From: Oopsacas minuta
Taxonomy: Eukaryota > Animalia > Porifera
Direction of reading: 5' to 3'
NCBI GenBank assembly: GCA_024704765.1
Contig: JAKMXF010000335.1
Span: 1-64,000, forward strand
Length of the DNA: 64,000 nucleotides
Shown here: in pieces, positions 9,792-15,289 of the stretch
Position numbering within the stretch: the first letter of the stretch is position 1
How the letters are laid out: the number at the start of each line of letters is the position of its first letter
The notes under the pieces: model-generated
Told to the model about the DNA's origin: nothing
The model's database searches: none
The model's input: only the letters and a program-made list of their open reading frames with translations
Program-made: the position numbers and the translations under genes

Positions 9792-11090
9792 CTAAACATA
9801 TTTATCCACAAATCTAGCTACTCTCTTATAAGCATCAATACAAGGAGATAATCCTGAGTAATAGAAGTAACCATGGAACATCTTCTCTCCCTCATAATAC
9901 TCAACACTAACTCCACTCACTTCTAACCTTTCCTTAAACAGTAATCCCTCACTAAGTAGAGTATCATATTCTGCTGTTATAAGTAGTGTAGGGGGAAGTA
10001 CAGAGAAATTTGATTGAAATAGCAACGTTGCATATGGACTTAATAGCGTATCAGCATATGAGGAGTATTTCTCAATTAACTCGGTGGGAGGTTGCCATTT
10101 TGATTCTACTATTAAATGAGGGAATTCATTTAATCTTTCCTGATAATTAGCACTCAATTTGGCTATGCTATGATTCAGAATATAAGGTATTAATTCTGTA
10201 TTTCCAATCAAAGCAAGTGACAAGTAAATAGCTATTAATTGAGGGGAAGACATTCTACCATTATTTGTGATAGGGATATAAGAATCTAGTTGTAAATTAA
10301 TCCACTGTAATCTAGGGTATACTGGTATAAGTCCTCTAAGAGGAGCGTGTCGTGTGTCTAGTCCCAATTCGTGCCACTTGAATGCCACATACACGGCGGC
10401 ATGACCACCAAAACTATCTCCCATTATAAATACGCGTTTACTATCAACGCCAAATTCATTACTTCTATAAACAACCTGTTTAACAACTGTAAGACAATCT
10501 TCTTGTGGTTGTGGGAAGCATACCTCTGGACTCTTACGATAGTTAGGCACGAATATCTTGACTTTCATATCATCAGCTAACTGACGTAATGAATAATCAG
10601 ATAGTTTGGGACTCTGCATAATACCCCCTCCCCCATGGAAGTAGAAAACTACAGGGCTATTGGGGGTGTCAATTAGCGTGTTTGGGGTATATACATATGT
10701 AACTATACCGTCTATAAGTAAATCTTGTACTCGTACAGGGTATTCTAATTGTATATCAGTATATTTAACTGTTGTATTAGATTCTAATTGATTTAACATA
10801 TATCTCAAGCTAGTGTTGAATTCTACTATCCCTGTGTATGATAATGTATTAGCAATAGATACCATGGATGTTATGATGTGAGGGACTGCGTATAGGAAGA
10901 ATTTCAGTGAGCAGGTCATGTCCCTATGCTCATTTGTTAGGTCACATGAAGCTATCCAGAAGTGAAGTGTTACTAGAGATATGAATGCTATTAGTGTGGA
11001 TATGAATGTTAGTTTGTATATATTGGTCAGGGTTGTGTTGTGTTGATTTTTAGGAGATTTGAGTGTGGGCTTGGTTTCTTTTGGATCCAT
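9792..11090 (-). CDS. Hormone-sensitive-lipase family alpha/beta hydrolase, AADAC/NCEH1-like, with N-terminal membrane anchor
   Basis: HGGG oxyanion motif, nucleophile GDSFG, AEYD and FHG triad positions, N-terminal hydrophobic helices. Confidence 0.88.
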   Translation of the reverse strand: MDPKETKPTLKSPKNQHNTTLTNIYKLTFISTLIAFISLVTLHFWIASCDLTNEHRDMTCSLKFFLYAVPHIITSMVSIANTLSYTGIVEFNTSLRYMLNQLESNTTVKYTDIQLEYPVRVQDLLIDGIVTYVYTPNTLIDTPNSPVVFYFHGGGGIMQSPKLSDYSLRQLADDMKVKIFVPNYRKSPEVCFPQPQEDCLTVVKQVVYRSNEFGVDSKRVFIMGDSFGGHAAVYVAFKWHELGLDTRHAPLRGLIPVYPRLQWINLQLDSYIPITNNGRMSSPQLIAIYLSLALIGNTELIPYILNHSIAKLSANYQERLNEFPHLIVESKWQPPTELIEKYSSYADTLLSPYATLLFQSNFSVLPPTLLITAEYDTLLSEGLLFKERLEVSGVSVEYYEGEKMFHGYFYYSGLSPCIDAYKRVARFVDKYV

Positions 11091-11570
11091 CTTTCATGAA
11101 ATTCTAAATACTAATTCAAAGATACAAATGAGATAAGTGATAACTAGAAGACTAACTAGACCACGACTACCCAGGAAAACCGGGAATTTCAAGCCAGAAA
11201 AGGATAAATCTATTAGGAAGAGCTTGTGTTTTTGTTTTTCAGACCCAACACTAGTGAGTACGTAAGTTATTATTCGTGGAATTTTGGAGCAAAAGTGTCA
11301 AAATTTGGGGACCGTTTTGGCTTCCAAACTTCACTTGAATCCACTAAAGGTGTGAAATAACAAAGTTTTACAAAAGAAAACTGTATCTCAATTAAAAGAT
11401 CAATTTTTTCGATCCAACATAATCTAGTGCCATAAATAAACCCTTAAGGAGTGATGAATTACGTATAATAAAGACATGTACCTACGTATGTACAAGTATA
11501 ATGTAATATATGCACTAAAAAGTCCAAATCGAGTTCAAATATACAAAAGAGCAAAAAACCCCTCAACAAA

Positions 11571-13117
11571 TCAGTTATCTACTCTGTCGGTATCAGAGAG
11601 TCTAGGTCGAGTATTTGTAGGGGCCGAATACTTGTTATTTGTGAATTGGGGAGTGGAATAGCTTGATTGAATTTTAGTGAGATTTGGGTCATTCACAGAA
11701 CTGATACCCAAATTAAACGAGAGCTTGCTATCACCGACGAAACTAGGAAATGTAAGGAAACTATTATCCAACATCATTACCTTCTTCAAATTAGATATGT
11801 TGGTTATTTCATTAGAGACCCTGCTCTAATGAATTATTATTCAAATATAGCCGTTCTAAACTCTCCAATTGAGCTATATCATCAGTGATTTCTACGATCA
11901 TATTATGATTCATGTATAGAACTTTCAAATTCTTCAATCTCAATACACCAGCTGGAATTGTAGTGAAATAATTCTCACATAAATGGAGATGACGTAATCC
12001 AGTTAGTTTACTGAAGTTTTCAGGTAATACAGTCAATTCATTAGTAGACAACCATAGTATTCGTAATTTATTGAAACACTCACATAAATTGAATTGGGTA
12101 TGTCTGTATCTGGTTGCCATGAGCATATAATTCTTCTAAATGATTTAAACCCGAAAGTTTAACAACCTCCAAATGATTCAGTCTATTATTAGACAACCAT
12201 AATACATGCAAATCTTCATGATAAGGTAAATCTAGTGGTAATTCATTTATATCTTTATAAGAGAGATCTATTACTTTCTTACCAGCTATAGACATCTCGC
12301 TTGTCTGTTCTATGCCAGGTGTAATCAATGGTGTAGCCACACTACGTCTAGGTCTGGTGACGGATAGTTCTGATGCGTTATTGAATAATTTTAGTTGGAG
12401 GGGTTTTTCTCTCTTTTTCTTTTCAACAGCTGGTAATTCTCCGATATTGTCGGAATTTGGGGCACTCTCTTCTTTGTTAGCGTCAGTCACTTCGCCGTTT
12501 TCTTGGCCTATATCTTCTGTCACGGTTACTTGCACATCATGCACACATTCCTCTGGTGCAGTATCGTAACCAGGACGGATTTTACTTAACAGCTGTTCAA
12601 AATTCTTTTGTAGCGTCAGTTTGGGCATATCCATTAGGTGAATGACGTTCACATCAGCCAATACAGGTGGGATGATATTGTTAGGATCTGGCGTAAAACT
12701 AACTACGATTGTACGGTTAGGAAGTTCATTAACAAAATTCTCCAGTATACGTAGCTTAGGGAGAGAGGTCTGTAGAGAAATGCAGGTATGTTGCTGACAG
12801 ATAAACTGGAAATATGATTCAGATATCACTATGATAAAGTAGTCACATTGTTTTAACTGCTCTCCAGCCCAGGTATCAGACTTTTCCTCTGAGCCGAATT
12901 GGTCTACAGATACGTAGATACGTTCATCAGTTAGAGTTTGAGAGAGATTGCATACTCGTGCTTTCTCATATTCTACACGGAACTTCCTGAGATGATCATC
13001 TTGCTCTGAGTTAATTGGAAGGAGGGAAATTGGGTCGTGACAGTATGAGATGAATAGTCTGGTTGGACCTGGGGGAATTTCTTCTGTGTCTCTAAAAGAA
13101 ATTGAATATAAGTACAT
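11571..13117 (-). CDS. SEFIR-like domain + linker + C-terminal LRRs; reading frame broken by two +1 frameshifts (error or pseudogene)
   Basis: RLFISYCHD and WAGEQLKQCDYFIIVISESY resemble SEFIR boxes. LxxLxLxxNxLxxLP repeats continue across three ORFs if one T (~12087) and one G (~11817) are removed. The first codons (MYLYSISFR) also read as a polypyrimidine acceptor ending at 13092, so an upstream exon is possible. Confidence 0.7.
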
Positions 13118-13393
13118 AATTTCTACAAATACAGGTCTACTTTACTTTAACGAAAACTATACTTTTTCTATTGCCAGAAGTAAACTAAGAATTTTGACCA
13201 AAGAACATATTAGAAATTGAATATTCACTTCTAGGTCAAATGGAAATTCGCTAGGACAGTGCTTACCTGGTAGCTCTAGAACGTTTAGACATCATATTGC
13301 TATCTAATGGGTAGATAAAGGATAATGAAGTGGGTTTCCCTGCTCCTCAGGTCCCGATTTTTTCGTAACAAGTAGTATACAGCAATAGATTTG

Positions 13394-13452
13394 CCCGATA
13401 GAAATGTACTATATTTGTCTGCCCCCAGACAATATAGTACATTTCTATCGGG
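13394..13452. repeat. Near-perfect 27-bp inverted repeat (hairpin)
   Basis: CCCGATAGAAATGTACTATATT(T)GTCTG-cccc-CAGACAATATAGTACATTTCTATCGGG; one-base bulge. Confidence 0.9.
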
Positions 13453-14006
13453 TGTAAACGGCCTATTAATAACTTTTTTCATGGAGATAGAGTCCAGTAT
13501 CGCATGGTAATTAGTGTGGATAATCGCAAATTCGCGTGTTTGCAAGGAAAATTCTTCAAAATTCGAATTGCTAATATGAGATTGCCACTGTATACTACAA
13601 AATTCAGAAAAACAATATTATAGAATAAAGAACAAATGGAGCTTTCCATCCAGAGGAATTAAGGAAAATTACATGTAATACCGGACTAATTATGTATTTG
13701 GACTGAATTATTCAAAACTGTGAGAATAAGTGAATTCATAGCACAATGGGTATCACTTATAAGAACATAAATATTTTGCTACTCCCAAGGCTGTTTATAT
13801 AAGCGATAAACACTGTTAATTAGAATAACACAAAGGACAATACCCATAGTCCCATACCTATGTGATGAGATAACAAGCAGGGAGTATGAGAATATAAGAC
13901 TGCACTAAAGCTATATCTATATGTTATGTGTGGGTATTTTCGTACACAAATTGTATCTATTAATGAAATACGTAGAATCAATTCAGATAATAACAGTATT
14001 GAGATA

Positions 14007-15289
14007 TTACAGATATGAGAATGCCTGTAGTTCGTTATGATCTTTATGGTCTACTGTTATAATAGTGAATACATCATATACTGCTATTCCTCTTAGATCA
14101 GTGAATTCTCCTGGAGCTGATCCTTCTTTACCGATTTTAGTAATCAGTTTCCTTTCATTAGAGAATATCTTGACTTGAGAATAACCTGAATCTGCTAGTA
14201 TTATAATTAGTTGTTGATCCATACTAAAGAATCAAACCTCATTCAACATATCTTTGTGTATAATACATCTAGTCAGTCTGCCTTGTTTGGAGAAAGCTTG
14301 TATAGGATAATCTGAGTCAGTGAAACAAACGTATACTTCATCTTTAGCTAGTGATATATCTCTGATAAAAGTGTTATCTTGCTTGAATTGAGTGATTAGA
14401 GATATTCTCTTTTCTTCATTCATCTCAGAGGTTAGGACTGTTAACTTCATATTCCTATATTCACCCACATAGATATGTGTATTGTCATTACAGATACATG
14501 ATAGTTGATACTCGTAAGTTTTATGAGATTCCCTCTTGAGGGTAGATTTGTTGAATTTAACTATTCTATTTCTACACTGTACTAATATAGAGTTATGTAG
14601 AATGAGGATATTCTCTGGATCAGCCATTACTTCATCTTTGAAAGAATTAACCCATTCTCCATTTCTAGAGAATATCTGTACTCTGTGTATGGAATCTGTC
14701 ACATAAATCTCATCATTAATAGAATCAATAACTATACCACATGGATTATATAGTTGATTATCTTGCTTGCCTCTGTCACAAGAACTCCATTTCAGTTGAA
14801 TAGGAGTGTTTTCTTCAAACTTTACAATTCTCTGATCACAACTAAACAGTGTATTGATACTCTCTCTCAACTCTCTCACTTTACAATTCAGATTGATAAA
14901 AGGGATATCTATATTCATTTCTCTTTTCACTGACTCTATTGCTTCAGGTATCTTGTCAAGAGGATTGGGTAGAGATGGGTCTAAGTCTTGGAAGAGTTTT
15001 TCCAGTTCACTTTTACGTTTGTTTATCTCTTCTATCTGTTTATTGATTTCATTTCTTCTCTTGTTCATCCTTTGATAGCTTCATCCCAGATACCTTCCAA
15101 TTCCCTGATAATCAGCTGAGTCTTGTCTTCAATGAGCTCTTTCATTTCTTCACTGACTCTCCTCACGAGTGACTTCTTGCTATCAATCACTTCTCTCAAT
15201 GTATTCATTCTGTCCTGTAGCTTGTTAGGGACTGGCATCAAGCTAACAGGTTCACAGGCTGGATTCTCGTTGTTTGGTGCAGTAGCCAT
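14007..15289 (-). pseudogene. Coiled-coil + NHL/beta-propeller gene, disrupted
   Basis: MATAP... coiled-coil N-terminus; LYNPCGIVID, HRVQIFS and GKEGSAPGEFTDLRGIAV NHL repeats; -1 frameshift at ~15070, in-frame TGA at 14232-14234, further stop at 14007. Confidence 0.8.

Follow-up and report, generated by a model that had tools for sequence, protein, structure and literature searches.

SEFIR domains are usually taken as the signature of IL-17 receptors and of the adaptor Act1/CIKS, while Porifera are reported to lack the IL-17 pathway (PMC11087794, PMC8353272) and the origin of the IL-17/IL-17R/CIKS pathway is placed after the divergence of sponges (PMC11087794). What, then, does a SEFIR-like domain do in a stretch of 64,000 nucleotides of the glass sponge Oopsacas minuta (contig JAKMXF010000335.1, positions 1 to 64,000; the window), where it is encoded on the minus strand in one chain with LRRs, in a setting independent of such receptors? 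An earlier note on this DNA, made from the letters alone, had read the locus as a direct sensor-adaptor fusion and had stated that animal SEFIR domains occur mainly in IL-17 receptors and Act1, a statement which is incomplete, as bacterial single-chain SEFIR defence proteins were omitted.

In the assembly, the locus is covered by three minus-strand open reading frames in three frames (12080-13117, 11812-12126 and 11571-11789). These are one gene, with an LRR periodicity that continues through both frame changes, and the relatives P0002-P0007 and P0022 from other assemblies keep one frame across both frameshift points. Positions 11300-15200 were covered with contigs from four public runs. The short-read-type contigs of three runs, X1, X2 and X3, which derive from one sample that is possibly the assembly's own source, differ from the assembly at the indels at 12092 and 11819 only. 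The base at 12092 is left out in 61.5/61.5, 173.8/173.8 and 44.5/44.5 of the depth in X1, X2 and X3, respectively, and the base at 11819 in 61.5/61.5, 173.8/173.8 and 86.4/86.4. Without the former base the frame reads YPINLCECF, compared with YPIKLCDCF in orthologues; without the latter it reads LEQVSNEITNISNLKKV, compared with LEKVSNEITKLTKLRKV. Both frameshifts are assembly errors. Another study's run contains a copy which is about 5% divergent in base substitutions and shows many small gaps.

The two frameshifts with their premature stops, together with a public protein model that ends at the first of them, could also be read as the signs of a decaying pseudogene or an annotation artefact, the three frames being the remnants of a broken gene. 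This reading is hardly credible, since the extra bases are missing from the entire depth (100%) of three read sets (one sample, perhaps the assembly's source), the corrected frame agrees with the orthologues residue for residue, and none of the five orthologues is broken, with purifying selection acting on them; it was ruled out on the evidence of the X1, X2 and X3 contigs. The public model concerned is LOD99_8361, a hypothetical protein of O. minuta to which the 345-aa frame 12080-13117 is 98% identical. It is chimeric at the 5' end, where its exons belong to the tail of the NHL gene upstream, and terminates at the false stop that arises from the indel at 12092. The model needs correction, and homopolymer-type indels of the assembly break real genes.

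Spliced and corrected, the gene encodes a 515-aa protein in two coding exons between positions 11571 and 13295 (Table 1). Exon 2 begins at 13091 behind an acceptor, ttcttttAG/A, which lies immediately 5' of the first conserved residues, R-D-T-E-E, and a yAG/A acceptor is found at the same codon, before R[DE].., in 5/5 orthologous loci. Over the 900 bp that precede exon 2, the sole block conserved in orthologues by blastn is 13262-13297, which reads ATG(ATG)-TCT-AAA-CGT-TCT-AGA-GCT-ACC-AG/GTAAGC and is compatible in phase with exon 2. This exon 1 was matched by blastn in all five orthologous loci with the pattern M(M)[AS][KR]RSR..R/GTAAG, its ATG conserved and its phase correct; in six genomes altogether the ATG and the GTAAG donor are conserved, the ATG lying 10 residues before the SEFIR domain. 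The intron between the two exons measures 175 nt in the window as opposed to 0.3-1.7 kb in the orthologues. The ATG at 13117, chosen by the ORF finder, lies inside this intron, and the gene limits are 11571-13295 instead.

From these comparisons we conclude that the protein most probably starts in exon 1, the predicted junction of exons 1 and 2 resting on comparative genomics. Upstream exons adding a transmembrane helix, an ectodomain, or a NACHT or ROC-COR module would, according to the earlier note, have turned the protein into a known class; none was found and other genes lie close upstream, and we conclude that such exons are in all probability lacking. The upstream neighbour varies by species, being the NHL gene in the window and in locus L005 and Med11 in loci L004, L006 and L007. 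In L006, about 460 bp separate the end of Med11 from exon 1 downstream of it, which leaves no space for large 5' exons. An AG stands a few bases before the ATG of exon 1 in several species, and a non-coding 5' exon is therefore possible.

Table 1. Predicted exons, protein regions and assembly errors of the SEFIR-LRR gene in the window.
Feature	Position	Residues	Strand	Description
Exon 1 (predicted)	13267..13295		minus	29 nt: start codon, 9 codons and 2 nt, MMSKRSRAT-R, then donor GTAAGC
Intron 1 (predicted)	13092..13266		minus	175 nt, GT...AG; donor CAG/GTAAGC, acceptor TTCTTTTAG/A
Exon 2	11571..13091		minus	Remaining coding sequence; stop 11571-11573; single frame minus two extra assembly bases
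Basic N-terminus		1-10	minus	MMSKRSRATR
SEFIR-type STIR domain	12563..13063	20-186	minus	
Linker, acidic then basic	12281..12562	187-280	minus	94 aa; from orthologue alignment
Eight LRRs	11718..12280	281-467	minus	23-24 residues each; from repeat table
C-terminal tail	11574..11717	468-515	minus	Partly conserved ..RPRLSD..; aligns with tails of P0004, P0007 and P0022
Assembly error, extra A/T	12092..12093			Two-base run (AA, plus strand); false stop at 12080
Assembly error, extra C/G	11819..11821			Three-base run (CCC, plus strand); false stop at 11812

The joined protein, spliced and free of indels, was built by script for translation, hydropathy, repeat listing and calculation of dN/dS, while searches and folding used the ORF segments of the window and orthologue sequences as queries, not the joined protein. 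The acidic and basic linker reported in the earlier note is present and carries the motifs KKK[RK]EKP, variable in length (KKKREKP in the window), and PRRS, which is invariant. The LRRs are present as well, but number eight rather than six or seven. Their region matches Pfam LRR_8 (3.6e-16) and LRR_4 (1.2e-12), and among solved chains it comes closest to Leptospira LIC11098, LRRD1 and SHOC2 (E 2e-36 for SHOC2), with the Leptospira LRR proteins and LRRD1 outscoring SHOC2. The repeats are of the cytosolic 23-residue, SHOC2/LRRD1-like type for protein-protein interaction, a similarity which is generic.

Neither a transmembrane helix nor a signal peptide was detected, the top 19-residue Kyte-Doolittle mean being 0.91 and the first 30 residues being polar or basic. 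In the ORFs of the window and in a full-length orthologue, no Pfam or NCBIfam match to NACHT, NB-ARC or ROC-COR was obtained, and a linker of 94 residues is too short to hold an NTPase module. Both absences had been anticipated from the letters and agree with the conserved start 10 residues before the domain. A death domain or U-box was not found by Pfam, which matched SEFIR/TIR_2 and LRR families only; inspection of the orthologue alignment by eye gave no conserved TRAF-binding motifs, and motifs of the PxExx type following the SEFIR domain are not conserved among orthologues. That the gene is intact and has this architecture is, in our judgement, very probable.

The N-terminal domain belongs to the STIR superfamily, within which the earlier note had asked for a comparison of SEFIR with TIR and TIR_2. 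Taken alone, the domain of the window reaches 18.9-21.1 bits with Pfam SEFIR PF08357 (E 4e-4 to 2e-3), below the gathering cut-off of 23, and 16-17.6 bits with TIR_2, so that SEFIR scores higher. All six orthologue domains match SEFIR (best E 3e-8) and, more weakly, TIR_2 (best 2.2e-4), and P0003 and P0005 have precomputed PF08357 matches. A profile made from orthologues only (A2) found no match in a PDB search. With profile A3, made from the orthologues plus three distant relatives which are themselves above both the SEFIR and the TIR_2 cut-offs, the PDB search returned the SEFIR domain of Act1/TRAF3IP2 (9ot1_E) at 6.6e-8 and Bacillus SEFIR at 9e-5 and 1.1e-4, as against 0.21 for RPS4, the best TIR. 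The PADLOC bSEFIR model (PDLC03957) was matched at E 1.4e-6, a match limited to model positions 39-181 of 412.

An AF2 model built on the six-sequence alignment was unusable (pLDDT 38) and was remade with 17 sequences. In Foldseek, four SEFIR structures rank first, with the Bacillus SEFIR domain as the best match and the SEFIR structures of IL-17RB and IL-17RA (3vbc, 4nux) among the top matches; the modelled structure alone shows no more than a STIR fold. As the SEFIR call is sub-threshold for the window sequence singly and significant at the level of the family, the assignment rests on sequence profiles, according to which the domain groups with SEFIR and not with TIR, so that neither an ordinary TIR score nor the lack of any score, which the earlier note had named as refuting, was the outcome.

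The earlier note had further proposed to look for the architecture in related genomes. Five ENA assemblies from five samples (ERZ25766962, ERZ25069837, ERZ25072740, ERZ25072730 and ERZ25071281) each hold one orthologue copy on a long contig of high coverage, in all five cases intact, syntenic and in a single uninterrupted frame. An Abhydrolase_3 (AADAC-like) gene lies downstream in the window (9792-11090) and in each of the five orthologous loci. Given 65-86% protein identity, the shared intron position and the synteny, we take the five sources to be related glass sponges. Mean pairwise identity is 77% in the SEFIR domain (dN/dS 0.05-0.12), 72% in the LRRs (dN/dS 0.11-0.13), where 102/191 columns are invariant, and 62% in the linker, the least conserved part (dN/dS 0.14-0.41). 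Overall dN/dS, from two less saturated pairs, is 0.10-0.19, and the gene is under purifying selection with a dN/dS of about 0.1-0.2.

In the Oopsacas genome the gene is single-copy. When the orthologue profile was run exhaustively with HMMER against 1.84 billion cluster representatives, it yielded five proteins only, namely two orthologue clusters and three distant relatives (1e-7 to 7e-6), and in this search the SEFIR-LRR family is limited to a narrow set of sponges. The distant relatives align along the entire SEFIR domain and include a cluster with XP_065845765.1 of Oscarella lobularis and a DED-SEFIR protein of amphioxus, kin of which have been named 'adapter protein CIKS-like' by NCBI. 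We discarded horizontal transfer and bacterial contamination as origins, since the gene is spliced, lies between animal genes (Abhydrolase_3/AADAC-like, NHL, Med11) and has the base composition of the genome, the G+C content of the window being about 35%.

In surveys of sponges, SEFIR genes have been counted, with one or two to a genome. The second, and only other detected, SEFIR gene of Oopsacas is located on another contig (236-aa ORF, Pfam 30.4 bits), and its product is a possible partner of the SEFIR-LRR protein. A complex prediction for the SEFIR domain and this second protein scored 0.00, which is not evidence either way.

In the literature, no description of a SEFIR-LRR fusion and no paper on SEFIR in Oopsacas was found, and among ESM-Atlas proteins outside the TIR families only generic LRR clusters were recovered, none of which combined SEFIR with LRRs. 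The combination is provisionally considered as undescribed, domain-architecture databases being outside the search. What is at hand is a conserved and constrained fusion of SEFIR and cytosolic LRRs across several related sponge genomes, which offers an entry point to the role of SEFIR domains in early animals and to the question whether the bacterial design that couples a STIR domain to a repeat sensor is found in animals.

By a narrow preponderance, the best explanation of the locus seems to us an intact, single-copy, two-exon gene for a soluble protein that acts as a cytosolic signalling scaffold. The reading as a cytosolic scaffold or adaptor draws on the domain order, the solubility and the constraint; the likelihood of such a role, of a non-enzymatic kind, falls just short of evenly balanced. 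The protein would reside in the cytosol, with the LRRs as binding module and the SEFIR domain as assembly module. The LRR solenoid would bind a conserved partner or ligand, upon which the SEFIR domain might engage in homotypic STIR contacts, either among its own copies or with the second SEFIR protein, and these contacts would relay a signal onward as do the SEFIR domains of IL-17R and Act1, minus the membrane receptor. The SEFIR-SEFIR recruitment of Act1/CIKS by IL-17R provides the precedent for such a scaffold (PMC11087794). A link to immunity, suggested by the domain types alone, we infer with caution.

Other functions have to be weighed against this scaffold reading. The pattern-recognition receptor of the earlier note, in which the LRRs bind a microbial molecule inside the cell and the SEFIR domain triggers an immune response, would resemble in its logic TLRs and plant TNLs, which likewise pair LRRs with a STIR-superfamily domain, and would suit a soluble protein without any other sensor-like module in animals that house dense microbial communities. 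A single-copy gene with one-to-one syntenic orthologues, the strong purifying selection on the LRRs (dN/dS and invariant columns as given above), the lack of the expansion and diversification that are usual for invertebrate receptor families, and repeats of the SHOC2/LRRD1 cytosolic protein-protein type all speak against it, and we regard it as rather unlikely. Constrained LRRs in a single-copy gene are less expected of a fast-evolving receptor than of a conserved scaffold or adaptor, or of a protein that senses some invariant ligand, and this last function is possible under such constraint. Vertebrate Sef/IL-17RD, a SEFIR protein, is a modulator of signalling by receptor tyrosine kinases, and LRRs of the SHOC2 type serve as a scaffold in Ras-RAF activation. 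A scaffold serving not immunity but growth-factor, Ras-MAPK-type or cell-cell signalling would go along with the proximity of the LRR region to SHOC2, with a single copy and strong conservation as befit housekeeping signalling, and with the reported absence of IL-17 ligands and receptors from sponges, because of which the SEFIR domain cannot serve the canonical IL-17 pathway (PMC11087794, PMC8353272). On the other hand, the LRR likeness is generic, LRRD1 and Leptospira LRR proteins scoring above SHOC2, and a core signalling component would not usually be distributed so narrowly among sponges. A non-immune role of this kind we regard as improbable.

An enzymatic effector is conceivable as well, in which, after the manner of the bacterial single-chain SEFIR defence protein and many TIR proteins, binding of a ligand by the C-terminal repeats lets the STIR domain oligomerise and cleave NAD+ or generate an NAD-derived signal. 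The match to the N-terminal SEFIR part of PADLOC bSEFIR, the Bacillus SEFIR domain as top structural match, the reported depletion of NAD+ by bSEFIR by means of the SEFIR domain at its N-terminus and the same domain order, with STIR first and sensor last, are in line with it, as are the nearest ESM-Atlas feature neighbours, bacterial proteins with TIR_2 and LRRs (score 0.93), and a Glu in helix alphaC' that does not vary within the sponge clade (E118, numbering of the domain alignment). Nevertheless, by rough mapping rather than residue-level structural alignment, the expected position of the TIR catalytic Glu holds no conserved acidic residue, the segment from QQH.. to SLPKL being acidic in one orthologue only, and the SEFIR-LRR clade, again by rough mapping, has an alignment gap where Oscarella, amphioxus and the second SEFIR protein of Oopsacas share an xEG motif; moreover, the animal SEFIR domains studied to date are scaffolds. 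The comparison of these residues carries little weight in either direction. We consider catalysis of this kind unlikely. Equally speculative is a cell-autonomous immune sensor-effector, a soluble SEFIR-LRR protein whose repeats would detect a microbial or viral cue and whose SEFIR domain, once oligomerised, would act by cleavage of NAD+ or by nucleating a signalling assembly; its likelihood we estimate as low. If true, animals would possess in this protein a counterpart to the SEFIR and TIR-LRR defence proteins of bacteria, and SEFIR-based immunity of animals would predate, and be independent of, the IL-17/IL-17R/CIKS pathway.

Whichever function applies, the sponge protein is not an IL-17 receptor, Act1/CIKS, an NLR/ROCO protein or a TLR. 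With the IL-17 receptors (IL-17RA-RE, Sef/IL-17RD) it has the SEFIR-type domain in common; these are, however, type-I membrane proteins with FN3 ectodomains, whereas the sponge protein has neither transmembrane segment nor signal peptide nor ectodomain. Act1/CIKS (TRAF3IP2), which provides the best profile match among solved structures, is likewise soluble and, as presumed for the sponge protein, assembles through homotypic SEFIR contacts, but carries its SEFIR domain C-terminally after a death domain, a U-box and TRAF sites, while the sponge SEFIR domain is N-terminal and followed by LRRs. TLRs, NLRs and plant TNLs similarly combine LRRs with a STIR-superfamily or other signalling domain. In TLRs the LRRs are extracellular with capping modules, and a transmembrane helix and a canonical TIR domain are present, whereas the sponge protein starts with a STIR domain of SEFIR-like type, ends with LRRs and lacks the helix; NLRs and TNLs possess a central NACHT or NB-ARC NTPase which is missing here.

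SHOC2 and LRRD1 have the same 23-residue cytosolic LRR type, yet carry a death-fold domain or nothing in addition, not SEFIR, and LRRD1, going by the protein name given by the depositors, sets a precedent for combining LRRs with an adaptor-type domain and no NTPase. The nearest SEFIR kin outside the orthologues, at 1e-7 to 7e-6, are Oscarella XP_065845765.1, in which the SEFIR domain is also N-terminal after a short basic stretch, and the amphioxus DED-SEFIR proteins (P0011-P0019); both lack LRRs, the former having about 200 C-terminal residues without Pfam match and the latter an N-terminal DED-like domain. From the bacterial defence protein bSEFIR and the Bacillus SEFIR structures (5y8e/5y8f), the sponge protein differs in that its C-terminal module is an LRR solenoid and its gene is eukaryotic, with an intron, conserved synteny among sponges and animal genes on either side. 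The bacterial TIR_2-LRR proteins, mostly of Bacteroidota and 300-370 aa long, show the same layout of a STIR domain and cytosolic LRRs without NTPase or transmembrane segment and are nearest by language-model features, a score of 0.93 that comes with no alignment or E-value, but their STIR domain is TIR_2 and not SEFIR. The design of a soluble single chain that unites a STIR domain with a repeat sensor is the same in bSEFIR, in the bacterial TIR_2-LRR proteins and in this protein of a sponge.

The public protein model LOD99_8361 that covers the SEFIR-LRR gene is a chimera, as its first approximately 90 residues derive from the tail of the upstream NHL-repeat gene, represented by the ORF at 14007-14222, and from an intergenic ORF within positions 13820-13981. 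The model also ends early at the false stop produced by the assembly indel at position 12092, so that most of the LRR region is missing from it.

Features in and around the SEFIR-LRR locus and the second SEFIR gene of Oopsacas minuta
Feature	Position	Strand	Description
Arylacetamide-deacetylase-like Abhydrolase_3 gene	window 9792-11090	minus	adjoins the SEFIR-LRR gene downstream
LOD99_8361 (P0001)	window 11571-14222		public protein model
Linker of the SEFIR-LRR protein	window 12281-12562		
NHL gene tail ORF	window 14007-14222		contributes to LOD99_8361
NHL-repeat ORF	window 14232-15068	minus	
Second SEFIR gene	G000:C302:366122-366505 (L002:1357-2067; contig C302 of the Oopsacas minuta genome G000, locus L002)	minus	236-aa ORF, Pfam SEFIR

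The NHL-repeat gene is part of a multi-copy family or of repeats, as is the spacer at 13396-13919. Over window 13396-15200, contig depth amounts to about 2-15 times the depth of the SEFIR-LRR gene, and the contigs from the public read sets (runs), when aligned to the locus, include numerous variant contigs and joints. A third assembly indel, an extra T after position 15075 in 4/4 runs and at 100% of depth, is located immediately 5' of the NHL-repeat ORF, and the N-terminal part of this gene is therefore probably mis-framed in the assembly. On the other side of the SEFIR-LRR gene, the Abhydrolase_3 gene is found directly downstream in all six genomes with syntenic copies; while this pairing is kept, the upstream neighbour differs.

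Within the otherwise variable linker of the SEFIR-LRR protein, a lysine-rich K/R cluster with a terminal KP is present in all orthologues, and a P-R-R-S motif is invariant throughout their alignment. Speculatively, the two elements may serve, respectively, as a patch resembling a nuclear-localisation signal and as a site for a basophilic kinase.

Besides the SEFIR-LRR gene, a sole other SEFIR gene was detected in the Oopsacas minuta genome. Its ORF matches Pfam SEFIR with 30.4 bits, over the cut-off, and its product possesses the xEG motif of canonical relatives, with an identity of just 23% to the SEFIR domain of the SEFIR-LRR protein.

The nearest non-sponge relatives of the latter domain are amphioxus (Branchiostoma spp.) proteins (P0011-P0019), a small family of DED-like plus SEFIR and also SEFIR-only proteins, some of which carry the name 'CIKS-like'. 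The most similar SEFIR domain beyond the orthologue group belongs to XP_065845765.1 (P0020) of the homoscleromorph sponge Oscarella lobularis, in which the approximately 200 aa that follow the domain are without a Pfam match. As in the SEFIR-LRR protein, its SEFIR domain lies at the N-terminus, where a short basic stretch precedes it, and XP_065845765.1 may be a second sponge protein with a SEFIR domain first and a variable C-terminal module.
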